From Trichosphaerium sp. ATCC 40318 (Eukaryota; Protista; Tubulinea), in the NCBI GenBank assembly GCA_038496445.1, contig JALMLS010000173.1, forward strand, positions 1 to 64,000: a stretch of 64,000 nt of DNA, in the 5' to 3' direction. The position numbers and the translations under genes are program-made. Of this stretch, positions 17,816 through 37,760 are shown one piece after another; the first letter of the stretch is position 1, and every line of letters starts with the position of its first letter. The notes beneath the pieces are model-generated. The model was given only the letters and a program-made list of their open reading frames with translations. It made no database searches and was not told the origin of the DNA.

Positions 17816-19573
<1,758 letters not shown>

Positions 19574-20205: not shown

Positions 20206-20904
20206 TGTATTTTCTGGAGTTGTTATTGAATTACCATTGCAATATCCTCTTTGGCTACAAGGTTTGTAAACCTTAAATATTGAATGGTATGACATGGATG
20301 GAGCCGCTTGAAACAGTACATGAAGACAAATAAAACGTTTCTACACTGATTCTTACTAGGTGGTTATTTACAAGCTAAGATAAGTATTGTCCGTATCGTA
20401 CAAATATCAAAGCTCTTGCGAGAACTAACTACAACGTACACTCAGAGCAAGATACTTTGGAAGCGCTTGTAATCAATTTAATTTCTTTGAGGTTTTTATG
20501 TTATCTCACATTATCTCATGTGAAATATTCCTCTTTATGCCTGAATGTGCCGTGGTGCTAGTAAGCTACCGTGTAAAAAGCATTATCAATTCGTTTTAGA
20601 ACTGCATAAGCTAATGTACCAAATAAAATAATGGTGGCTAAGAACACGTGGTGTCGCAATAATATTGTATGTGTTGTCCACGTGGATTTGTTTTTTTCAG
20701 AACTGATAAGATCTGCGTGTAGTTTTGACAGATCTCGCAAGAACTAACAAGATCCTGCAAGAACTAACAGAAGTTGCAAGATCTGTCAGATGACTAAACA
20801 CGAAACCAAAATCACAAACAGCAAAAAGTTGCAAACTTGAACAATATGGACAATGTGGTTACAAATAAAGAAAACCGAAACAGTTGAAGGGTGCTCAAAA
20901 AAAG

Positions 20905-21510
20905 TGAGCCTTGATAAATTTACAAGTCCTTTATGTTTTTGCAGGCTTTTTGGAGGTTTGCTGCTCAAAATCTTTGCCATGTGTACAAGTAAACTAAGTT
21001 GTTTCAGAAAATCAAGTTGTAAAAAAAGTAATTAAAATTTCAAGGTACCCCTCTCCTGTTGAAGCTGATACTTCTATGAACGCGCTAACCTTTGGGTTGT
21101 TAAACTTGGTTTGACCATCCTCTGAAGTGATTGTTCTATGATCTACTCTATCAATCTTATTTGCACATACAATGGTGTGACAATTGTAGTATATAGGTAG
21201 GAGAGCACTGTATCGCTCAGAACCTAGGATATTTTGTTAGATTTAGTAATTTGAGAGTTTGCTATAGACATATGATTGGCGTACATTCATCAAATGTGTT
21301 TCTTGTTATGCGTATGCCAAGCTACAAATGAGTTGAGATGTTTGAACAAGTGACTTGATTTTATGTACGCTAGTTTTCCTTAAAACAAGGTTAGTGAATA
21401 TAAATGTATTATAAAACCGTACCTACAGCTGAACACCCAAGAAATACTGCTTTGTATCTTGTAGGCTTTTCCGCCTGTGGCTTTTCTACAATGTAGCAGT
21501 ATGAGCTCAT
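20905..21510 (-). pseudogene. Rab5-like GTPase pseudogene (copy E), mirror of copy C with internal deletions
   Basis: Exons 1-3 are present (GCSAVG, GKTS, LGIRITRNTFDE) and exons 4-5 are deleted. SERYSALLPIYY is fused directly to NCHTIVCANKID; the terminal exon MAKILSSKPPK is present. Confidence 0.8.
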
Positions 21511-21850
21511 TGTATTTCCTGGAGTTGTTATTGAATTTACACGACCTTTTTATGGTTAGATTTTGCCTCAAGTTAGAGACATACCCACATTTGATTACTA
21601 AACTGACAGGATCTTGTCAGTTTTGTTAGTTCTGTTAATCACAGGGAAAAAAGGAACCACACCTCTACATAGCATACGTGCGAGTTGTATTGCTATTCTC
21701 AATGGATTTATGTTCAACTATACAGTCGAAGAGAATGGTACTAAGGGGCTTTCATACCAGTCCTTGTCAAGAGCTGAACGGACTAGTCAACATTTGTGAA
21801 ACAATTTTACAAAAAAAAAACACCATAAACTATGCCAAAAAGGTTTTTAT

Positions 21851-24800
21851 CTAGTTTCCAGGATTTAAAAAAGACACCAATTCTTGTACAATACTGTGTA
21901 CAGTTACTAGAAGATACTTATCAGCACTTTCAAGAGAGTCATACAAACTATCGTAGACAAGATTGATGTCTGATAGCATGTACTGGTACTTTGCTTGTGT
22001 TATGACATAAATTATAGCAGGCCATACTTTATCAGCTCCACCACATAAACGGTAATAGTCGTACAGTTTTGGCTCTTTGTCTTTTGTTTTTTGGGAAAAA
22101 ATTGAGAATGTGCTTCTTTTTTTCTTTTCCGTATTAGGTTGAGAAGCTGCTTTTTTTTTTTTTTCGGTAATACTTATGCAAATGCCGATACGTCGACTCA
22201 TCTCTCTTAAGTGACAAAATTTTTGGTAAGGAGATTTCGCTTCTGATATTCGTTTTATTGCATCAACAGCATCTTTCCACTGTGTAGAACCTTGGAGCGC
22301 CTATTTCGTAAAATATTAAGTACAAAAGAATATTTTGGAACACGTGCTTCTGGCAAGGGGTCGTTTGTGTGTTCAAGCATAGCCTTGGTCAACTCCTTAT
22401 CTGCTTTTTCGTACTAAATAAATAGAAAATTAGGCTTGAAGGTACATGGTGGAAAGTATCTTAAGTACATGTCTTTTGTATGTGCCATACACTAGAGAAG
22501 AGATATCTTGTTCCTCAAATAGTTTGGCATGTACCCAAGCCATAATCGTATTTTTAACCTCATATGGGAGCTTAAATTTTGGTGTAAAATTGCGAACTAT
22601 CGTAGCGAGTACTTCCTTCAATGCACTTGCAAGTTTTTCGACATCTGACGTGCTGTGCTTTTGACCAAACGTAATACCAAATTGTTTAATAGAATTCTCA
22701 TGTTGTCTACTCTACAATTTAGACTTATAAGGGTACCACAACGTACTCTAGTTGTTCATATAACGCAGTAGTACTAAATACCGGACTATTCTTGTAAACC
22801 TTGAATATATCAGAAATAATCACGTTTCTAAAGTCACGTACTTGATGGTTTTCTGGTTTTATTTTATCTACCATCCACCCAGTTATGCCACCTTTGCATA
22901 TAGGACACTTATCTTGTAGCTTATAAGCACAATAGGTACATAAATGGTTGCAACGATGAATTGTGTCTTTACACACAAAACATATTGGTGTCTTAACAAA
23001 TCATGTGAGTGTTAAAGCGTGAATTTTGTTACATACCGTGCTTTCTGTTGGGTCAACTTTCTCTCTTATTTCTGCAGTATTAAAGTTATATTGAGTACAT
23101 GCCCCCTCTATTTTTACTCTATGTCTTGTCAAGAACTCTCTCTTCCATACATATTCACATAGCGCAGTTTCAGTTAAGTCCAAAGACAATCGTTGCGCCT
23201 GCATTATTAGGTTAGATTACAATAGTTAAAAAAAAAAAACAGTTAAGTATTCTTACGTTAACAACACTCTCAATGTCTAAGACGCAAACATTAAGGCAAT
23301 TACATATGTACGCAATATTCCCTTCAAGGTTGCCCAGAGCCTTATTAGTCAAATCAGTGAACTCTGACTTGTTTGTGATATCTTTTAAGTTCTTTATCAG
23401 CATTTCAAATAGTCTCTGTTTGGTTTCTACATCGTGTTAGTCTAAACAAACGTAAAAGCACTACAAAGCATACCTTGTTCATCCTTTCCAGACGGCATTT
23501 TAGAAGTCCATATGTTTGGAAGAGCAATTGCTCCCGCTCCAACAGCCAGAACAGCCACACCGCCAGTAGTCACTGTAAGTACAGATAGCATCGTGGCAGC
23601 TGCAGGGTTCAATAAGTAGTATTCAACAACATTTTTGTACCAACTATTGCTACACTTGCCGCACCAGCAACGCCAAGTGAAGCTGTAGCAACATTTGAAC
23701 TTGTAGGTGCTTGGAAAAATGAGAGTAAGAAATTAAACGGACGAATGGTATATACCTAATCGTTGAGCATTCCACTATCAATTTATAAGTACACTTTGGT
23801 AAAAAATAGTAATAAATAACACGAACCTGAGTACTCAATTCAAGAGTTTGGGATGAGCTAAAGAAAACCATGACAACAAATTTAAATAAAAGGTGCGAAA
23901 GCAAGGCAAAACCCACTGAAGGTACTTTTTCTTCCTTTTTTTTTTTTTTTTTTTTTCATTCGCTGCACATATGATTTGAACGTACCAAACTGAACTACTT
24001 TTATTCTTAAAAACTTCTTTGGTGATTGTTTGTAAGCTTTCTACTTGACTTTGTATCCACCTTTTGAATTAAATTAATTGTTAAATACACGTGATCAAAT
24101 AATACAAAACACTCACACATCTAGTTTTTTTCGCTCCTCATGGACAAAGGTAATCAGAGTATCATGTGAATATCTATCAAAATATATCTTTAATTGTTCA
24201 TAAACCTTCGACTCGTAATCAGTGAAGTGCCTATTTCTTTGGAACCAGCTTGAACTTGGTAATTCAAAAGGAACTGTTGGTGTCATTTCCTAAAGACAAA
24301 AACCAATATAAGCGCGTCATAAGAGAACAGTTTTTGATGAAAAAAAAACGATACACATACCTCTAATTTAGTAGAACCACACAGTACGTTTTTAAATTTG
24401 TCTACTACTTTTGAGAAACGCGCCTTGAAATTTTTCTTAACTTCTTCTACTTTTAGTCTTGCTTCCGTTTCAAATCTTCGAATCTCAATATGTATTTTTT
24501 TAACTTTTCGTTCAACATCTTTGTAATCAATCTTGGACAGAGTAGTGTTTGGCTTATCAATCGATTTTGTAACGTGTGCCAATATTATCTTGGACAAGAA
24601 TAAATGCTGCACACTAAATAGAGGATCAACAGTCACAAATGTATTCTATCCATGTTTCTGTACCGAATCAATTGACGCATATTACTCAACATTGTTGATA
24701 CTGTTGTGTTTGACACTGCTTGCAAACTTTCACCGAGAGCTCTTTTGAACTCAGTGAAACCCGGACTCTTTTCGCCATAACTACATTGCTTTATGTTGAA

Positions 24801-26098
24801 CTATGTGTACTACCATTAAATATACTAACAATTACATTCCACGCACTTTAAATATTTTAGGGTCCTCAATCTGTAACTCGTCCCGTAATATCTTCTCTGC
24901 CTTCCGAATATCTTCTTCTGAGTCTGTACTGTAAATATTGAGAACAAACAAAACATTTTTGCCCATGGAATGCTGATGAGCAATAAATTTTAGTTCACGT
25001 TCTCCCTAAATTGTAGAGTCAGTTCTGTAAATCTCTTTGTGCTCGTACAGTAACGTCTCCACACAGTAACACGTGGATAATCAAAGGTGCTGAATAAACA
25101 TAATGTTGTGCTTGTAATCTTGAGCGTTCAGTGCTATTTCCAGGGGTATCGATGATGCATATACCAGGCTTGTCTATGCCAAAAATAGGGCTACATTTGG
25201 TCAAAAAAAAAAGTTCCAGATTTTTTTATGTACCGTTGAAATTGGACTTCCTTTACTAGCGGATATTTATGTAGCACCTTCGGTATATCAAATAGTACAC
25301 GCAGTGTTTCACCTGGTTATTATTAGCTGTGTAGTTACAGATAATAGTATACTAACCAAGCTTATCTGCGGAAATTTCTGGATTTTTTTGCAAAGTCGCC
25401 AATACCGATTTAAGTTCCAGGTGCTTGCCTTGTACATCAGGACGATCCCACGTTTGTTTTATATCAGCGTTGGGCTCTAAAGCAACGTGTGCTGCTCTAA
25501 ATTGGTTAAGGATAAAAAAAGTTACGAAGTACAAAAAATTACCTGGCTGTGTCCCGCATTCCTGAAGAAATAATACAAGGACAAGATGTGCACCGTGTTT
25601 TTGCAGTTGGTAGTATATCTGCGCCAAGAAATATATTGCCGAGGGTGCTTTTTCCTGCATTACGACCATAGAGTACCACAGTGGCCTTATCACTTTCAAG
25701 CTTTGGTTCGTTCAATCAGATTTGCTATCAAAAAGTGTACCGTACCCTTTCCAAGTGCTCCCTAGACATTTCATGTACAACAGCAAACGGGGAAGTCCCA
25801 GAAAACAGATTTTTGGAAACGACAGACACCTCCTTCATTTCTGAGAACGATTTTAATGCCATCTACAAATTTAAGTAAGGTGGGGTGGCATATGGGCCGT
25901 TTCACGTACTTGAAATTCTTTGTCTTCATAAAACTCTTTTACTTTTTCTTTTAGCGATATGGTGAGGCCAAGCTGTTCACTGAGCGAATTGATATCAATT
26001 TCTGGCTCCAGCTCTGAGTGTATGTGAGTAATTCAATCATTGGCATTAGAAAAAGCGCTGATACCAGTATTAGTATTTAGTTCCACACTCTTTTCCAT
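21851..26098 (-). CDS. Dynamin-like GTPase - TM hairpin - RING - VPS9 fusion protein, copy 1
   Basis: Spliced: MEKSVELNTNT|ELEPEID..; VVLYGRNAGKSTLGNIFLGADILPTAKTRCT (dynamin-type G1/G2); IIDTPG (G3); hydrophobic GVAGAASVAIV..MLSVLTVTTGGVAVLAVGAGAIALP; RING-like CFVC..CNHLCTYC..CPIC; VPS9 SPYQKFCHL..GGADKVWPAIIYVITQA..KYLLVTV. Confidence 0.85.
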
Positions 26099-26337
26099 GG
26101 ACAAAAAGAACTAAAGATTTGTGTTGGTTATCCGTTTATTTGTTTTGTGGTTTGTTCCCTTCCTACTTTTACACTTTGTGCTTTTCAATGAAAGGAACCG
26201 CTAGCGCTACTTTTTTGCTCACTATATGTTATGTTGCTTTGTGGAAAAAAAGAACCGCCAATTTCTTTCATGTGAACGCACAAGGCTCAACATGTGAGTG
26301 AATAGTTCTTGTAAATTCAATAAACAAAAAAACAAAC
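26099..26337. promoter_or_regulatory. Putative bidirectional promoter of pair 1 (dynamin-VPS9 / Rab A)
   Basis: 239 bp between divergent ATGs; the sequence is conserved with 30076-30311. Confidence 0.6.
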
Positions 26338-27473
26338 ATGACGTGCTGTTCTCCTGTAACCACTAAGCCACCGACAACAGAGCGAACTCTTGTATACAAA
26401 GTTGTAGTTCTTGGGGCCATATATGTGGGTACGGTTTATAACACATTAATATTTACACTAACCTTGTTTTAAGGGAAAACTAGCGTACATAAAATCAAGT
26501 CACTTGTTCAAAACATCTCAACTCATTTGTAGCTTGCCGGGCGCATAACAACAAACACATTTTATGATGGTACGCCAATCACATGTAGCAAAGGCTCAAA
26601 TTACCAGACCAGAAACCCACAATTGCAGCCGCATACTTGACGAAAAATCTTGACACAGACGACGGAAAACAGATAACTCTAGAAATATGGTACGCAAGTC
26701 TATTTTGTTTCATTACACTAATCTTATTCCACCAGGGACACAAGTGGTTTGGAAATGTACGACTTGGATTCAATCTAACGAAATATCCTAGGTGACGAGC
26801 GATACAATTCTATCATACCTATGTACTACAGGTGCGCCATATAAATCGCGATATCTGGTGTTATAAATTAAAGTTACAGTTCGACTGGCTTTTTTTCCCC
26901 AACGTCACAGAATGAGATTATGTATTTATTTCGCTTATAAAATGAGCGTTTTCAACGTGTGGGGAAAAAAAGCGGAGAATTTGAACGAAATCCTTTTTCA
27001 AATACAACTAATTTGTTCCTCTTGTTAACCAATATGCTAGAAACGCAGACCTTGCCCTTATTGTATATGATGTAACCAATTCAGAGTCACTTGAAGTAAG
27101 AGAATTTATTTTCACAAGGAAAAGTGTAACAAGTTTAGAAAGCTGATTATTGGATGAAGACGCTTCAAAAAAAAGTGCTCGATTGTGACACCATTGTATG
27201 TGCAAATAAGATTGATGAAGTAGATCATAGAATCACTTTAGAGGATGGTCAAAGTAAGTTTAACAACCCAAAGGTTGCTGCGTTCATAGAGGTATCAGCA
27301 AAAACAGGAGAGGGTGTTGATGGGTACCTTGAAATTTTAATTACTTTTTTTTACAACTTGATTTTCTGAAACAACTTAGTTTACTTAAACACATGGCAAA
27401 GATTTTGAGCACAAAAACCCCACAAAATTCTCATCAACGTAATGGATTGCGAGTTTTAGAGAGCACAGAATAA
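26338..27473 (+). CDS. Atypical Rab5-like small GTPase, copy A (9 exons, intact)
   Basis: Spliced: [106 protein letters not shown]. All introns are GT-AG. Confidence 0.88.
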
Positions 27474-27479
27474 ATAGAG

Positions 27480-27945
27480 TCGCCAAGGCTCACTTTTTTT
27501 GAGCACCATTTCACCTGTTTCGGTTATATTTATTTGTTATCATCATTCAAGTTTGCAAAACTATGCAACTTTTTGCTGTTTGTGACTTTTGGTTTCTGTG
27601 TTTAGTCATCAGACAGATCTTGCACCTTCTGTTAGTTCTTACAGGATCTTGAAAAAACAAAATCCACGTGGACATGTACAAGGCATACAAATATTTTTGC
27701 GACACCACGTGTTCTTAACCACCATTATTTTATTTTGTACATTAGCTTATGTAGTTCTAAAACGGGTACAAATTGATAATGCTTTTTTACACGTTAACTT
27801 ACTAGCACAACAGCACATTCAGGCGTATATATTTCACGTGAGATAACGTAAAAACCACAAAGAAAATTAAATTGATTACAAGCGCTTCCAAAGTATCTTG
27901 AGCTGAGTGTACGGTATTTCCATAGCGTAATAATCCGTTTTAGAG
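27480..27945 (+). repeat. Dispersed non-coding repeat; other copies at about 20440-20905 (-), 28000-28255 (-), 28452-28920 (-) and a diverged one at 40490-40700 (+)
   Basis: Shared core TTTTTGCTGTTTGTGA..TTTAGTCA..AGATCTTGCA..GTTAGTTCTT..CCACGTG. A 20-bp sub-repeat AGATCTTG(C/T)AAGAACTAACA is tandem at 28121-28160 and about 20729-20770. Confidence 0.75.
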
Positions 27946-28972
27946 TATAGGTGACAACTGTTGGATTAGAGGTCATCAGAGGCACCAACAGAACTCAACG
28001 CTAATGTACCAAATAAATATAATTTGTTGAAACACGTGTAGCAATAATATGTACGCGTTGTACACTGGATTGTATTTCCTCCGGAACTGACAAGATCCGT
28101 CAGATCTTGTAGTTTTTGACAGATCTTGCAAGAACTAACAAGATCTTGTAAGAACTAACAGAAGTTGCAAGATCTGTCAGATCTGACTAAACACGAAACC
28201 AAAAGTCACAAACAGCAAAAAGTTGCAAAGATTAGCAAACTTGAATGATACGGACAATACCCACATTTGATTACCATTGCAACATCCTCTTTGGCTACAA
28301 GGTTTGTAAACCTAAATATATTGAGTGGTATGACATGGATGAAGCTGCTTGAAACAGTACATGAAGACAAATATAACTGACAGAATCTTGTAAGTTTGGT
28401 AATCAGGGAAAAAAGGAACCGCACCTCTAATGTACAACGATTGTCTCCTACTAAAACGGATTATTACGCTATGGAAATACCGTACACTCAGCTCAAGATA
28501 CTTTGGAAGCGCTTGTAATCAATTTAATTTTCTTTGTGGTTTTTACGTTATCTCACGTGAAATATATACGCCTGAATGTGCTGTTGTGCTAGTAAGTTAA
28601 CGTGTAAAAAAGCATTATCAATTTGTACCCGTTTTAGAACTACATAAGTTAATGTACCAAATAAAATAATGGTGGCTAAGAACACGTGGTGTCGTAATAA
28701 TATTTGTATGCCTTGTATATGTCCACGTGGATTTTGTTTTTTCAGAGATCCTGTAAGAACTAACAGAAGGTGCAAGATCTGTCAGATGACTAAACACGAA
28801 ACCAAAATCACAAACAGCAAAAAGTTGCAAACTTGAACAATATGGACAATGTGGTAACAAATAAATATAACCGAAACAGTTGAAGTGCTCAAAAAAGTGA
28901 GCCTTGGCGACTCTATTTATTATGAACAATTTACCTTTAACATTCTGAATTGATACAATCACTTTGTGCTCT

Positions 28973-30075
28973 TTATAAATTTACCAGTCCTCCCTGTTTA
29001 TGAGAGCTTTGTGGGGGTTTGGCACTCAAAATCTTTGCCATGTGTGCAAGTAAGCTAAGTTGTTTCAGAACATCAGGGTGTAACAAAAAAAGTAATTAAA
29101 AATCTGTTTCAAAGTACCCATCAACACCCTCTCCTGTTGAAGCTGATACCTCTGTGAACGCGGTAACCTGTAGATCTTCAAACTTGCATTGAACTTCCTC
29201 TGAAGTGACTGTTCGATCTACTCTATCAATCTTATTTGCACATACAATGGTGTAACAATCGGGCACATTTTTTTGAAGCTCCCTCATCCAATAATCAGCT
29301 CTCTAAACTTGTTACACTTTTCCTAGTGAAAACCACCCTGGTGACAATAAATAAATTCTCTTACTTCGAGTGACTCTGAATTGGTTACATCATATACAAT
29401 AAGGGCAAGGTCTGCGTTTCTAGCATATTGGTTAACAAGAGGAACCAATTAGTTATATTTGAAAAAGGATTTCCTTCAAATTCTCTGCTTTTTTTCACCA
29501 CGTTGGGAAAAAAAGTCAGAGTTGAACATAGTCGAACTGCAACTTTAATTACACCAGCGGTTTATATGGCGCACCTGTAGTATATAGGCATAAGAGCCTT
29601 GTATCGCTCGTGACCTAGGATATTTCGTTAGATTGTATCCAAATTGTACATTTCCAAACCACTTGTGTCCCTAGTGGAATAACATTAGTGTAATGAACAC
29701 AATAAACTTACTTACCATATTTCTAGACCTATCTGTGTTCCTTCGTCTGTGACAAGGTCTTTCGTCATGTATACGCCTCCAATTGTGGGTTCCTTGTCTG
29801 GTAATTTGAGTTTGATATAGACATATGATTGGCGTACCATCATCAAATGTGTTGTTTATTATGCGTGTGCCAAGCTACAAATGAGTTGAGATGTTTGAAC
29901 AAGTGACTTGATTTTATGTACGCTAGTTTTCCCTTAAAACAAGGTTAGTGTAAATATTAATGTATTATAAAACCGTACCCACAAATATGGCCCCAAGAAA
30001 TACAACTTTGTATCTTGTAAGAGTTTCCTCGTTTGTTGGTGGGTTTTCTACAGTGTAACAGCAAGAGGTGCTCAT
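28973..30075 (-). CDS. Atypical Rab5-like small GTPase, copy B (intact)
   Basis: Spliced: [109 protein letters not shown]. Confidence 0.88.
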
Positions 30076-30311: not shown

Positions 30312-33300
30312 ATGGAAAAGAGTGTGGAACTAAATACTAATGGTACCAGTGGTTATTCTTATGCCAACAATTGAATTACTCACATACACTCAAGAGTTGG
30401 AGCTAGAAATTGATATCAATTTGCTCAGTGAACAGCTTGGCCTCACCATATTGCTGAAAGAAAAAGTAAAAGAGTTTTATGAAGACAAAGAATTTCAAGT
30501 GCGTGAAACGGCCCATATGCCACCCCACCTTACTTAAATTTGTAGACGGCATTAAAATCGTTCTCAGAAATGAAGGAGGTGTCTGTCGTTTCCAAAAATC
30601 TGTTTTCTGGGACTTCCCCGTTTGCTGTTGTACATGAAATGTCTAGGGAGCACTTGAAAAGGGTAAGGTACACTTTTTGATATTAAATCTGATTAAACGA
30701 ACCACAGCTCGAAAGTGATAAGGCCACTGTGGTACTCTATGGTGGTAATGCAGGAAAAAGCACCCTTGGCAATATATTTCTTGGCGCAGATATACTACCA
30801 ACAGCAAAAACACGGTGCACATCTTGTTCTTGTATTATTTCTTCAGGAATGCGGGACACAGCCAGGTAATTTTTTGTACTTCGTAACTTTTTTTTCCTTA
30901 AACCAATTTAGAGCAGCACGCGTTGCTTTAGAGCCCAACGCTGATATAAAACAAACGTGGGATCGTCCTGATGTACAAGGCAAGCACCTGGAACTTAAAT
31001 CGGTATTGGCGACTTTGCAAAAAAATCCAGAAATTTCCGCAGATAAGCTTGGTTAGTATACTATTATCTGTAACTACACAGCTAATAATAACCAAGGTGA
31101 AACACTACGTGTACTATTTGATATACCGAAGGCGCTGCATAAATATCCGCTAGTAAAGGAAGTCCAATTTCAACAGTACTTAAAAAAATCTGGAACTTTT
31201 TTTTTGACCAAATGTAGCCCTATTTTTGGCATAGACAAGCCTGGTATATGCATCATCGATACCCCTGGAAATAGCACTGAACGCTCAAGATTACAAGCAA
31301 AACATTATGTTTATTCAGCATCTTTGATTATCCACGTGTTACTGTGTGGAGATGTTACTGTACGAGCACAAAGAGATTTACAGAACTGACTCTACAATTT
31401 AGGGAGAACGTGAACTAAAATTTATTGCTCATCAACATTCCATGGGCAAAAATGTTTTGTTTGTTCTCAATATTTACAGTACAGACTCAGAAGAAGATAT
31501 TCGGAAGGCAGAGAAGATATTACGGGACGAGTTACAGATTGAGGACCCTAAAATATTTAAAGTGCGTGGAATTTAATTGTTTGTAATATTTAATGGTAGC
31601 ACACATAGTTCAACATAAAGCAATGTAGTAAAGGTGAAAAGAGTCCAGATTTCACTAAGTTCAAAAGAGCTCTCAGTGAAAGTTTGCAAGCAGTGTCAAA
31701 CACAACAGTATCAACAATGTTGAGTAATATGCGTCAATTGATTCGGTATGGAAACATGGATAGAATACATTTGTGCCTGTTGATCCTCTATTTAGTGTGC
31801 AGCATTTATTCTTGTCCAAGATAATATTGGCACATGTTACGAAATCGATTGATAAGCCAAACACTACTCTGTCCAAGATTGATTACAAAGATGTTGAACG
31901 AAAAGTTAAAAAAATACATATTGAGATTCGAAGATTTGAAACGGAAGCAAGACTAAAAGTAGAAGAAGTTAAGAAAAATTTCAAGGCGCGTTTCTCAACA
32001 GTAGTAGACAAATTTAAAAACGTACTGTGTGGTTCTACTATATTAGAGGTATGTGTATCGTTTTTTTTTTCATCAACAACTGTTCTCTTATGACGTGCTT
32101 ATTGGTTTTTGTCTTTAGGAAATGACACCAACAGTTCCTTTTGAATTACCAACAAGTTCACGCTGGTTCCAAAGCAATAGGCACTTCACTGACTACGAGT
32201 CGAAGGTTTATGAACAATTAAAGATAAATTTTGATAGATATTCACATGATACTCTGATTACCTTTGTCCATGAAGAGCGAAAAAAACTAGATGTGTGAGT
32301 GTTTTGTATTATTTGATCACGTGTATTTAACAATTAATTTAATTCAAAAGGTGGATACAAAGTCAAGTAGAAAGCTTACAAACAATCACCAGAGAAGTTT
32401 TTAAGAATAAAAGTAGTTCAGTTTGGTACGTTCAAATCATATGTACAACGAATGAAAAAAAAAAAAAAAAGGAAGAGAGTACCTTCAGTGGGTTTTGCCT
32501 TGCTTTCACACATTTTATTTAAATTTGTGGTCATGGTTTTCTTTAGCTCATCTCAAACTCTTGAATTGAGTACTCAGGTTCGTTATTTATTACTATTTTT
32601 TACCAAAGTGTACTTATAAATTGATAGTGGAATGCTCAACGATTAGGTATATACCATTCGTCCGTTTAATTTCTTAGTCTCATATTTTTCCAAGCACCTA
32701 CAAGTTCAAATGTTGCTACAGCTTCATTTGGCGTTGCTGGTGCTGCAAGTGTAGCAATAGTTGGTACAACAATATTATTGAATACTACTTATTGATCCCT
32801 GCAGCTGCCACGATGCTATCTGTACTTACAGTGACTACTGGTGGTATGGCCGTTCTGGCTGTTGGAGCGGGAGCAATTGCTCTTCCAAACATATGGCCTT
32901 CTACAATGCCGTCTGGAAACGATGAACAAGGTATGGTTTGTAGTGCTTTTATGTTTGTTTAGACTAACACGATGCTAACACGATGTAGAAACCAAACAGA
33001 GACTATTTGAAATGCTGATAAAGAACTTAAAAGATATCACAAACAAGGCAGAGTTCACTAATTTGACTAATAAGGCTCTGGGCAACCTTGAAGGGAATAT
33101 TGCGTACATATGTAATTGCCTTAATGTTTGCGTCTTAGACATTGAGAGTGTTGTTAACGTAAGAATACTTAACTGGTTTTTTTTTTTTATCTATTGTAAT
33201 CTAACCTAATAATGCAGGCGCAACGATTGTCTTTGGACTTAACTGAAACTGCACTATGTGAATATGTATGGAAGAGAGAGTTCTTGACAAAACATAGAGT

Positions 33301-34571
33301 AAAAATAGAGGGGGCATGTACTCAATATAACTTTAATACTGCAGAAATAAGAGAGAAAGTTGACCCAGCAACAGAAAGCATGGTATTTAAAAAAATTCAC
33401 GCTTTAACACTCACATGATTTGTTAAGACACCAATATGTTTTGTGTGTAAAGACCCAATTCATCGTTGCAACCATTTATGTACCTATTGTGCTTATAAGC
33501 TAAAAGAGAAGTGTCCTATATGCGAAGGTGGCATAACTGGGTGGATGGTAGATAAAATAAAACCAGAAAACCATCAAGTACGTTACTTTAGAAATGTGAT
33601 TATTTCTGATATATTCAACAAGGTTTACAAGAATAGTACGGTATATAGTACTACTGCGTTATATGAACAACTAGAGTACGTCATGGTACCCTTATAAGTC
33701 TAAATTGTAGAGTAGACAACATGAGAATTCTATTAAACAATTTGGTATTTTGTTTGGTCAAAAGCACACCACGTCAGATGTCAAAGAACTTGCTTGTGCA
33801 TTGAAAGATGTACTCGCTAAGATAGTTGGCAACTTTACACCAAAATTTAAGCTCCCATATGAGGTTAAAAATACGATTATGGCTTGGGTACATGCCAAAC
33901 TATTTGAGGAACAAGATATCTCTTCTCTAGTGTATGGCACATACAAAAGACATGTACTTAAGATACTTTCCACCATGTACCTTCAAGCCTAATTTTCTAT
34001 TTATTTAGTACGAAAAGGAAGATAAGGAGTTGACCAAGGCTATGCTTGAACACACAAACGACCCCTTGCCAGAAGCACGTGTTCCAAAATATTCTTTTGT
34101 ACTTAATATTTTACGAAATAGGTGCTCCAAGGTTCTACACAGTGGAAAGATGCTGTTGATGCAATAAAACGAATGTCAGAAGCGAAATCTCCTTACCAAA
34201 AATTTTGTCACTTAAGAGAGATGAGTCGACGTATCGGCATTTGCATAAGTATTACCGAAAAAAAAAAAAAAGCAGCTTCTCAACCTATTACGGAAAAGAA
34301 AAAAAGAAGCACATTCTCAATTTTTTCCCAAAAAACAAAAGACAAAGAGCCAAAACCGTATGACTATTACTTTTTATGTGGTGGAGCTGATGAAGTATGG
34401 CCTGCTTTAACTTATGTCATAACACAAGCAAAGTACCAGTACATGCTATCAGACATCAATCTTGTCTACGATAGTTTGTATGACTCTCTTGAAAGTGCTG
34501 ATGAGTATCTTCTACTAACTGTACACAATATCGTAAAAAAATTGGTGTCTATTTTAAATCATGGAAACTAG
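30312..34571 (+). CDS. Dynamin-like GTPase - TM hairpin - RING - VPS9 fusion protein, copy 2
   Basis: Same exon structure as copy 1: VVLYGGNAGKSTLGNIFLGADILPT, IIDTPG, TM segments at about 32700-32900, CFVCKDPIHRCNHLCTYC..CPIC and VPS9 GGADEVWPALTYVITQA..EYLLLTV. Confidence 0.85.
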
Positions 34572-35147: not shown

Positions 35148-36196
35148 ATGAGCTCATGCTGCTACATTGTAGAAAAGCCACTGGCAGAAAAGCCTGCAAG
35201 ATACAAAGCAGTATTTCTTGGGTGTTCAGCTGTGGGTACGGTTTATAATACATTAATATTTACACTAACCTTGTTTTAAGGGAAAACTAGCGTACATAAA
35301 ATCAAGTCACTTGTTCAAACATCTCAACTCATTTTTAGCTTGGCATACGCATAACAAGAAACACATTTGATGAATGTACGCCAATCATATGTCTATAGCA
35401 AACTCTCAAACTACTAGACCAAAAACCCACAATTAGAGCTGCATTCATTACGAAAACTCTTGTAACAGACGAAGGAAAACAAATACACCTGGACATTTGG
35501 TAAGTACCCTATATTGTTTCATACCACTAATGTTATTCCACAGGGACACAGACGGTGCCTGAACTGCGTTAATTTTAGACAATCTAACAAAATATCCTAG
35601 GTTCTGAGCGATACAGTGCTCTCCTACCTATATACTACAGGCACACCAATAAAAAGTTGTACTAATCGCTGGTGTTGTAAACTAAAATATCACGTGTTTA
35701 AACCCTTACTTTGGTGGAATTTTGACTTGTTCCTCTCTTGTGTTAACCAAATACCCTTAGAGGCGCAGACCTTGCCATAATTGTATACGATGTATCCAAC
35801 AAAGAGTCATTCAAAGTAAGAGAATTTATTTGTTTACACAGATAGAAGCGTAACATGACTAGAGAGCTGATTGTTGGGTGGAAGAGATTCATGAAAGAGT
35901 GCACAATTGTCACACCATTGTATGTGCAAATAAGATTGATAGAGTAGATCATAGAACAATCACTTTAGAGGATGGTCAAAGCAAGTTTAACAACCCAAAG
36001 GTTAGCGCGTTCATAGAAGTATCAGCTTCAACAGGAGAGGGTGTTGATGGGTACCTTGAAATTTTAATTACTTTTTTTACAACTTGATTTTCTGAAACAA
36101 CTTAGTTTACTTGTACACATGGCAAAGATTTTGAGCAGCAAACCTCCAAAAAGCCTGCAAAAACATAAAGGACTTGTAAATTTATCAATTGTATAG
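35148..36196 (+). CDS. Atypical Rab5-like small GTPase, copy C (intact only if a weak GC donor at 35641 is used)
   Basis: [105 protein letters not shown]. Confidence 0.72.
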
Positions 36197-36965: not shown

Positions 36966-37760
36966 TCAGGTGTCCCGATAGATTTTATGAACACCAACAA
37001 GGGATTGTAACCCTTTATCTGTAATGTACCTGCAAAATGAAAGAGATATGGTATGGACGCCAGCAAGTGCTTTTAATCCTTCATCTGTAACTGATGTAGC
37101 ATCTAGAAAGATTGTATGAACGCTGGCAAGTGCTTCTAACCCTTTATCTGAAATTGATGTGCAAGATAGATAGATTGTGTGAACACCAGACAGTGCTTTC
37201 AATCCTTCATCTGTAACTGAGGTATCATTAAGAGAAATCATATGTACACCAGAAAGTGCTTTCAACCCTTCATCTGTAACCGAGGTATCATTAAGAGAAA
37301 TGACATATACACCAGAAAGTGCTTTCAACCCTTCATCTGTAACCGAGGTATCAGTAAGAGAAATGGTATGTACGCCAGCAAGTGCTTTTACCCCTTCATC
37401 AATTAAAGGATGCGCACATTGACTAAGGTTAATGGAACGAACACCAGCAAACGTCTTTATAACATCATTAGACGTTGCTTTGCCAGTAAGTGTGATGTGT
37501 GTGTTGGAGAGTACTTGAGTGTTTTAAAATAGCTTTTGCTTGGTCAACACTTGAAATACAGACGCGACAGTATCCTATAATATCGTGAATGATAGATGCA
37601 AGGCGATGACAAGTTTGAGAAGCGGCAAAGCGTGAGTTTGTTGTTTTACGTAAAATATGAGCTAAAATCTCTGTGGGAAGGTCTAATATGCTTGTCGTAG
37701 GTTAGAACAGTTTAACAACTAATTTTGTTCTTACTTCTCGGTTATGCTCTTTTCTGACAT
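36966..37760 (-). pseudogene. F-box/LRR gene with 66-bp (22-aa) tandem LRRs, frameshifted
   Basis: F-box ILDLPTEILAHIL..SQTCHRL, a frame break near 37525, then near-identical repeats ALSGVHxISLNDTSVTDEGLK. No clear splice acceptor at the expected position after exon 1. Confidence 0.7.

Follow-up and report, generated by a model that had tools for sequence, protein, structure and literature searches.

Can a factor for guanine nucleotide exchange (GEF) and the small GTPases encoded beside it change their recognition surfaces together after a duplication? The question is raised by a stretch of 64,000 nucleotides from the amoeba Trichosphaerium sp. ATCC 40318 (assembly GCA_038496445.1, contig JALMLS010000173.1, positions 1 to 64,000; here called the window), in which two copies of a gene joining a dynamin-type GTPase to a VPS9 domain, as found in GEFs such as Rabex-5, each lie head-to-head with a Rab gene: copy 1 with Rab A and copy 2 with Rab B. 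The original prediction matched charge differences between the two VPS9 domains with opposite differences in the switch regions of the two Rabs and proposed pair-specific recognition. Our analysis points, tentatively, to two VPS9 domains that may be diverging in function, in either substrate preference or activity, together with fast-diversifying Rab neighbours. Residue-to-residue charge pairing is not established, and neutral drift on an exposed face of the domain is nearly as likely an explanation as functional co-divergence.

Comparison of the window with itself revealed an inverted duplication (21681-26886 versus 34740-29530) with 94.3% identity across 5.2 kb. It is flanked on both sides by more diverged segments bearing Rab genes (20911-21598 versus 36188-35059, 95-96% identical, and 26959-27438 versus 29501-28996, 85%), and its centre holds an additional inverted pair with 94% identity. 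An assembly fold-back was ruled out because the arms are 94% and not 100% identical. The duplicated unit would have comprised three genes, a tail Rab, the fusion gene and the head-to-head Rab; after the duplication one arm retained two Rabs and the other arm one.

The identity of the VPS9 domain was examined with the last exon of the fusion gene. The copy 2 exon matched Pfam PF02204 over profile positions 1-98 of 104, with a score of 34.6 bits against a cut-off of 27. A single-sequence phmmer search of the PDB gave no solved VPS9 relative; a profile of four sequences, consisting of both copies and the distant homologues P0001 and P0002, retrieved Rabex-5 (1TXU, 2OT3, 4N3Z, 4Q9U) at E=5.7e-8 and AtVPS9a (2EFC) at E=8e-7. 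Rabex-5 numbers were assigned by counting along this alignment, anchored on Asp313, Pro317 and Tyr354; the alignment stops at 358, and numbers beyond that point come from an ungapped extension. In this alignment the two stretches that vary between the copies fell on helices aV4 and aV6, which bears out their earlier assignment to the aspartate-finger helix and the tyrosine helix. In aV4 the Asp of the GAD motif corresponds to Asp313, the first of two Lys/Glu (K/E) sites to 314, the Pro to 317, an I/L site to 319 and an I/T site to 320. In aV6 the second K/E site corresponds to 353, the Tyr to Tyr354, and the V/L, S/N and Q/K sites to 357, 361 and 364, with E/K (365), F/I (369) and P/H (372) farther along the helix. 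The two K/E sites thus immediately adjoin the equivalents of catalytic Asp313 and Tyr354. The GAD Asp finger at the start of aV4 and the Tyr at the start of aV6 are invariant in all five sequences compared (both copies and homologues P0001-P0003); the Pro317 equivalent is present in both copies (VWP) and not in the three outgroups. Glu351, which is moderately conserved, is reported as one of four residues important for activity and is needed for full Rabex-5 activity (PMC4379102), is replaced by Ala in both copies, with Asp at 352 and E/K at 353; a one-residue loop shift is possible. AlphaFold2 modelled the exon, at low confidence, as all-helical (residues 82-95, 98-119 and 121-139 of the exon), giving a mean predicted local distance difference test score (pLDDT) of 54 and a predicted template modelling score of 0.37. 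We conclude from the sequence comparisons that the domain is a true but divergent VPS9 domain, and predict it to be a Rab5-family GEF.

The two last exons differ at 14 of 142 codons. Thirteen of the last 116 residues differ, 12 of them in two stretches, exactly as originally described, and all four peptides quoted for these stretches are present. The accompanying description of the GTPase part as almost identical needs qualification, since 22 of 507 residues differ there (GTPase and stalk, 4.3%) versus about 10% in the C-terminal third (RING, 12 of 89; helical region, 10 of 120; last exon, 13 of 131). With helix boundaries taken from the AlphaFold2 model, aV4 and aV6 carry 9 of the 14 differences, 9 in 33 residues against 5 in the 109 residues elsewhere in the exon (Fisher p=6e-4), and aV5 carries none. 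Plotted on an ideal helix, the seven variable sites of aV6 all fall on the same face, and its centre is 27 degrees away from Tyr354 (p=0.02; joint p=0.003). The two stretches contain 13 replacement changes where 3.8 would be expected at the neutral rate (a post hoc comparison, P=1.7e-4) and have a replacement rate (dN) of 0.15; the remainder of the exon, including the Lys-rich linker, contains 2 where about 10 would be expected (P=0.003). Two other origins of the stretches were ruled out: an old patch that escaped gene conversion, since the stretches have 13 replacement and only 2 silent changes, and ectopic conversion from a distant paralogue, for which 7-8 differences per 60 nt are too few. 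Over the protein as a whole, the ratio of replacement to silent rates between the copies (dN/dS, Nei-Gojobori) was 0.45 for the GTPase, stalk and transmembrane part (P=0.01 for a value below 1), 0.81 for the next part, and about 1.2 for the whole C-terminal third, which comprises the RING, helical bundle and VPS9 regions.

The outgroups allowed us to assign a direction to several of these changes. Homologues P0002, P0003 and P0001 have D, E and E at position 314 and E, E and N at position 353, and Rabex-5 and AtVPS9a carry D and E at 314. Lys314 and Lys353 of copy 1 are therefore derived, and copy 2 retains the usual acidic residues; Ile320 and Phe369 of copy 1 are derived as well. The Lys beside the Asp finger of copy 1 was found in none of the relatives or reference VPS9 sequences aligned. 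At 364/365 the outgroups read NN or DN, which makes both QE (copy 1) and KK (copy 2) derived. In a separate part of the protein, the helical region upstream of VPS9 (33783-33788 in copy 2 and its counterpart in copy 1), neighbouring residues are swapped, ..DVKEL.. versus ..DVEKL.., and this swap belongs to a second dense patch with 8 differences in 27 residues.

The spliced models of the Rab genes contain the Ras-superfamily motifs GAIYVGKTS, DTSG or DTDG, NKID, and SAK or SAS, with a Pfam Ras match on exon 8; searches of the PDB with single exons gave weak or no matches. The switch motifs originally reported, GDERYN with QKPT and GHERYK with KEPT, are present, although the number of Rabs, given as two, is in fact four: three intact genes, A, B and C, and a degraded one, D, which has lost by deletion the switch I exon and the segment between PIYY and NCHTIV. 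Rabs of the Rab5/21/22 type have a signature near the switch I Phe and in switch II, which in Rab5 reads TIGAAF and ERYHSLAPMYYRGA. The corresponding TIAAAY, TIRAAF and TIGGVY and ERYNSIIPMYYRNA of the amoeba Rabs resemble Rab5. The catalytic switch II Gln is replaced by D in Rab A, H in Rab B and S in Rab C. None of these three has a Cys prenylation motif, or indeed any Cys, within its last 40 residues, and their N-termini carry CC (MTCC, MSTSCC and MSSCC).

Rab A and Rab B are 68% identical; 63 of 196 residues differ, and 24 of these differences change charge. Their dN is 0.20, compared with 0.067 for silent sites (6 per 89 sites, counted in codons that keep the same residue, since the Nei-Gojobori dS of 0.17 is inflated by multiply changed codons) and 0.069 for introns (Poisson P about 1e-13). 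Replacements thus outpace neutral change about threefold, and Rab A and Rab B show strong diversifying selection. For the Rabs, too, a distant paralogue acting through ectopic conversion was ruled out, silent divergence in codons with unchanged residues being only 0.067. One run of Rab B, residues 139-159, has 13 derived changes in a row. Each intact Rab gene has two 11-nt microexons with flanking introns of 45-48 nt; one encodes GKTS of the P-loop and the other DTSG of G3. The G of GDERYN is part of this DTSG motif, which an intron splits onto the microexon. Introns 1, 2 and 8 are near-identical among all four Rab loci, and the exons flanking them are strongly different; this strong conservation of neighbouring introns may reflect splicing signals for the microexons.

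We read these results as follows. Since the duplication, for which neutral divergence is about 4%, the GTPase and stalk part has stayed under purifying selection, and amino acid changes in the VPS9 exon have gathered on the exposed face of the two helices bearing the catalytic Asp and Tyr, which together form the predicted Rab-binding groove. In that period the Rab5-like proteins A and B, encoded head-to-head with the fusion genes, exchanged a third of their residues, with replacements about threefold ahead of silent changes. Copy 1 has the derived states, with Lys in place of an otherwise acidic residue beside the Asp finger and Lys beside the Tyr. On this reading each copy would have its neighbouring Rab as substrate, the changed residues would make contact with that Rab, and their change would be adaptive.

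Several results weigh against this proposal, and some of them speak for neutral drift, in which one VPS9 domain, probably that of copy 1, is partly redundant and under relaxed constraint, solvent-exposed helix faces take up changes at the neutral rate, and the charge swaps are chance matches selected from among many differences. Nucleotide divergence of the last exon (17/429, 4.0%) is equal to that of the introns (40/993, 4.0%), so the signal is one of redistribution and not of excess. The comparison of dN/dS between the copies that had been suggested as a check of the prediction, counted here by region, did not place the VPS9 exon significantly above 1 (15 replacement and 2 silent changes, dN/dS 1.95, P=0.30), and the same was true of the two stretches alone (P=0.31). 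A scan statistic for clustering over the whole protein was borderline (p=0.056 with 22-codon windows and 0.023 with 70-codon windows), and within the faster C-terminal third it was not significant. The boundaries of aV4 and aV6 used in the enrichment test came from a low-confidence model (pLDDT 54), and relaxed constraint, too, would let changes settle on the exposed face of such an amphipathic helix. Divergence of the Rabs is not focused on the stretch that contacts the GEF (18 of 48 switch and interswitch residues versus 45 of 148 others, p=0.38); being spread over the protein, much of it would be driven by something besides GEF recognition. In the two other organisms where neighbours of fusion-gene homologues could be inspected, no Rab gene was present within several kb. 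Relaxed constraint on copy 1 in particular is also consistent with the number of states disagreeing with the distant outgroup P0002 over the whole protein, 13 in copy 1 and 6 in copy 2, and with the decay of Rab D, the tail Rab of copy 1.

Drift is less easily reconciled with the pattern inside the exon, where the linker and aV5 are almost unchanged and the catalytic helices have taken most of the changes. The changed sites are conserved between distant homologues and are not generally fast: with an overall identity of 53% in this stretch, P0002 and P0003 have the same residue at 8 of the 12 variable sites versus 32 of 64 other columns. In addition, the two charge reversals lie immediately beside the two catalytic residues, and both copies keep their reading frame and splice sites. 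On balance we regard drift as possible, with slightly less confidence than we place in functional divergence of the two VPS9 domains alongside their Rabs.

A stricter version of co-divergence, and the one originally put forward, would have Lys314 and Lys353 pair with Rab A through the extra Asp of its switch II (and the Asn), Glu314 and Glu353 with the His and Lys of Rab B, and positions 364/365 with switch I, making two orthogonal lock-and-key pairs. The placement of the changes gives it some appeal: positions 314 and 353 flank Asp313 and Tyr354, which contact the P-loop, switch II and the interswitch segment (summarised in PMC4379102), each fusion copy is head-to-head with one Rab, and the replacement rates of the two partners match (dN 0.15 for the VPS9 stretches, compared with 0.20 for the Rabs). 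The charges themselves do not bear it out. The stretch of Rab A and B from switch I through the interswitch to switch II has 8 charge changes, with A more positive at 4 and more negative at 4, and the VPS9 stretches have 5, of which 3 go one way and 2 the other. In net charge, VPS9 copy 1 (+2 relative to copy 2) and its neighbour Rab A (+1 relative to Rab B) are both the more positive, which is not complementary. The pairing was therefore picked post hoc from 5 x 8 charge-changing sites of mixed sign, and because a complementary partner can be named for any VPS9 site, sequence counts give it no statistical weight; that too is as neutral drift would have it. A third intact Rab, Rab C (GSERYS, QKPT), is an equally near candidate substrate for copy 2, and the Rab site, with D, H and S in A, B and C, gives no direction of change.

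What is known of Rabex-5 catalysis bears on the individual sites. In the interaction of Rab5 and Rab21 with Rabex-5, two aspartates hold the P-loop Lys, that of the Rab's own DxxG motif and Asp313 of Rabex (PMC3919270). The switch II Gln is reportedly not positioned to contribute to this catalysis, and Q80A has little effect (PMC3919270). The D/H site in switch II is thus no known determinant, because the Gln position hardly matters for Rabex catalysis. Removal of the adjoining switch II Glu of Rab5, in contrast, doubles the Rabex-5 rate, possibly through easier entry of Asp313 (PMC3919270), which indicates that charge near the entry of the Asp finger matters. Plausibly, the extra negative charge in switch II of Rab A (GDE) could get in the way of the Asp finger, with Lys314 compensating for it; this is the sole part of the pairing proposal with a mechanistic rationale. 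Overall, strict lock-and-key pairing appears unlikely.

The breadth of the Rab divergence suggests another source of change, a shared outside pressure. A third party, such as effectors of intracellular bacteria or of viruses acting on the Rab5-VPS9 axis, could diversify both the Rabs and the VPS9 face without any pair-specific recognition. Divergence over the whole Rab surface and not only the GEF-contact region, at a dN/dS of about 3, would be in keeping with such a pressure, and bacterial VPS9-like effectors that act on Rab5/21/22 are known (PMC4379102). Rabs that lack both the catalytic Gln and the prenylation Cys would fit decoy-like proteins. Nothing in the window points to an interaction with a pathogen, however, and we consider this explanation improbable, more so than strict pairing.

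Models of the fusion genes were predicted from open frames and GT..AG sites, guided by intron lengths, which peak sharply at 40-59 nt; the copy 1 model was transferred from copy 2 by pairwise alignment, and domains were assigned by Pfam matches to single exons. In order, the fusion protein would contain a dynamin-type P-loop GTPase, a stalk, a hydrophobic membrane hairpin, a RING-like Cys cluster, a helical region and, in the last exon, VPS9. Dynamin_N matched the P-loop exon with 26.5 bits, and the RING-like cluster matched zf-C3HC4_3 at E=7.6e-4. The P-loop itself (30744 in copy 2, about 25664 in copy 1) reads YGGNAGKST in copy 2, YGRNAGKST in copy 1 and GRSKVGKST in P0002. With Tyr at the expected position of the first Gly in the fusion genes, their GTPase may be atypical.

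Two features raised the possibility that copy 1 is a pseudogene and its changes are decay. If the intron at 25191-25233 were not removed, its run of ten T residues, versus nine in copy 2, would shift the frame of exon 5. In addition, copy 2 exon 1 (30340-30498) has no intact counterpart in copy 1, where the exon 1 ATG is absent and exon 1 has a 1-nt deletion. The T run lies, however, inside a canonical intron of 42 or 43 nt with splice signals typical of the locus, and the copy 1 frame is thus uninterrupted, giving an open reading frame of 1003 residues from the ATG that opens exon 2. Splicing gives the junction ..FQ(H/R)PIFGID, in agreement with RIRPIFGID of homologue P0002. The copy 2 intron is 42 nt and stop-free, so its retention would stay in frame; retention in copy 1 would truncate the protein. 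The start of copy 2 may likewise lie in exon 2 (30546-), with exon 1 untranslated. Downstream of exon 1 there are three exonic indels between the copies, each of 3 nt, and the N-terminal two-thirds has a dN/dS of 0.45. Because the frames are open, the splice sites canonical and the exonic indels 3 nt, both fusion copies look functional, and decay of copy 1 is very improbable.

Relatives of the fusion gene are few. Among 1.8 billion representative proteins, only two relatives were found at E<1e-3, P0001 and P0002, both distant; a word-index search gave one more, and metagenome scans gave none. The fused architecture is present in at least two other eukaryotes, as seen in P0002 (923 residues), P0003 (851 residues) and Logan contigs. 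Fusions to dynamin or to transmembrane segments go unmentioned in a eukaryote-wide survey of VPS9 proteins (PMC6032885).

The positions of all features are collected in Table 1. The window has a G+C content of about 36%, and its introns are very short. A dispersed repeat of about 280 nt, with at least three occurrences that are 82-84% identical (20435-20714, 27634-27913 and 28481-28746), flanks the Rab genes and occupies the centre of the inverted duplication; each occurrence has an open frame with LLRHHVFLATIILFGTL.

Table 1. Features of the inverted duplication and its surroundings (positions in the window)
Feature	Position	Strand	Description
Fusion gene copy 1	21851..25862	-	20 coding exons, 1003 residues; ATG at 25862, stop 21851-21853; all splice sites GT..AG
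Fusion gene copy 2	30340..34571	+	21 exons, 1059 residues if exon 1 is coding; hand-curated, 40-59 nt GTA..AG introns
Copy 1, extra intron	25191..25233	-	43 nt, GTACAT..TGTAG, T10 run
Copy 2, counterpart of T-run intron	31176..31217	+	42 nt, GTACTT..TGTAG, T9 run
Copy 1 last exon, VPS9 domain and Lys-rich low-complexity insert	21851..22279	-	142 codons and stop; identified by alignment and by the Pfam match to its copy 2 counterpart
Copy 2 last exon, VPS9 domain	34143..34571	+	PF02204, E=2.7e-8, 34.6 bits
Copy 1 aV3-aV4 loop and aV4 (GAD Asp finger)	21995..22066	-	variable L, R, K (314), I, I
Copy 1 aV6 (Tyr354 helix)	21860..21919	-	variable K (353), V (357), S (361), Q (364), E (365), F (369), P (372)
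Copy 2 aV3-aV4 loop and aV4	34356..34427	+	variable P, F, E (314), L, T
Copy 2 aV6	34503..34562	+	variable E (353), L, N, K, K, I, H
Rab A	26338..27473	+	9 exons, 201 residues; G1 GAIYVGKTS, switch I DDQKPT, G3 DTSGDERYN, NKID, SAK; N-terminal MTCC
Rab B	28973..30075	-	9 exons, 199 residues; switch I DDKEPT, G3 DTSGHERYK
Rab C, downstream of copy 2	35148..36196	+	9 exons, 201 residues; switch I YQKPT, G3 DTDGSERYS; intron 6 has a GC donor
Rab D, degraded, downstream of copy 1	20924..21510	-	decayed counterpart of Rab C, 95-96% identical where retained
Rab microexons	A 26474-26484, 26736-26746; B 29932-29922, 29670-29660; C 35281-35291, 35544-35554		
Leucine-rich-repeat protein gene	36966-37400	-	LRR_6, E=2e-15; internal tandem repeats
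Gene for protein with two ZZ-type zinc fingers	18962-19573	+	E=2e-16

The specificity of GEFs for Rabs is normally ancient and static, and the catalytic faces of VPS9 domains and the switch regions of Rabs are among the most conserved surfaces in membrane traffic. The young duplication described here displays the opposite pattern, with Rabs that replaced a third of their residues and a GEF exon that changed almost only on its catalytic helices. If the pairs are specific, the locus would show GEF-GTPase specificity in the course of being rewired, with only 13 candidate residues in the GEF; if they are not, it would show ordinary drift after duplication and, separately, diversifying selection on atypical Rabs, which would still be of interest. 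A bolder possibility, which we think doubtful and no likelier than strict pairing, is that the dynamin-RING-VPS9 protein and its linked Rab5-like partners, N-terminally acylated and lacking the catalytic Gln, form a self-contained, fast-diversifying recognition cassette that duplicates as a unit into private GEF-Rab pairs, with the charge reversals beside the Asp and Tyr setting specificity. Such a cassette would be a eukaryotic counterpart of insulated bacterial two-component or toxin-antitoxin pairs, perhaps driven by conflict with parasites.

Three known systems invite comparison. The amoeba domain is like Rabex-5, Vps9 and AtVPS9a (PF02204; 1TXU, 2OT3, 2EFC) in that it scores above the Pfam cut-off, keeps the equivalents of Asp313, Pro317 and Tyr354 in both copies, and is encoded next to GTPases that look Rab5-like. 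It is unlike them in being very divergent, in having a Lys-rich insert of about 45 residues before aV4, Ala for Glu351 and no C-terminal helix beyond aV6, in following a dynamin-like GTPase, a membrane hairpin and a RING-like finger within one fusion protein, and, in copy 1, in having Lys at the otherwise acidic position 314. For the Rabs, the closest parallel is ARA6/RabF1, a plant-unique Rab5 whose GEF is VPS9a. Like it, the amoeba Rabs would be Rab5-family members without a C-terminal prenylation motif, apparently anchored by the N-terminus and activated by a VPS9 GEF; plant RAB5 proteins fall into two named groups (PMC5947987). Unlike it, they lack Gly2 for myristoylation and the catalytic Gln, are genomically linked to the GEF and have a dN/dS of about 3. 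For the locus as a whole, the comparison is with the co-diversifying paralogous interaction pairs of bacteria, namely histidine kinases with response regulators, toxins with antitoxins and colicins with immunity proteins. The amoeba locus differs from these in having two pairs only, too few for a covariation test, and a third Rab in addition. It resembles them in that both partners were duplicated together and both changed at the predicted interface, 9 of the 14 VPS9 changes falling on the interface helices aV4 and aV6 and 18 of the 48 switch and interswitch residues differing between the Rabs.

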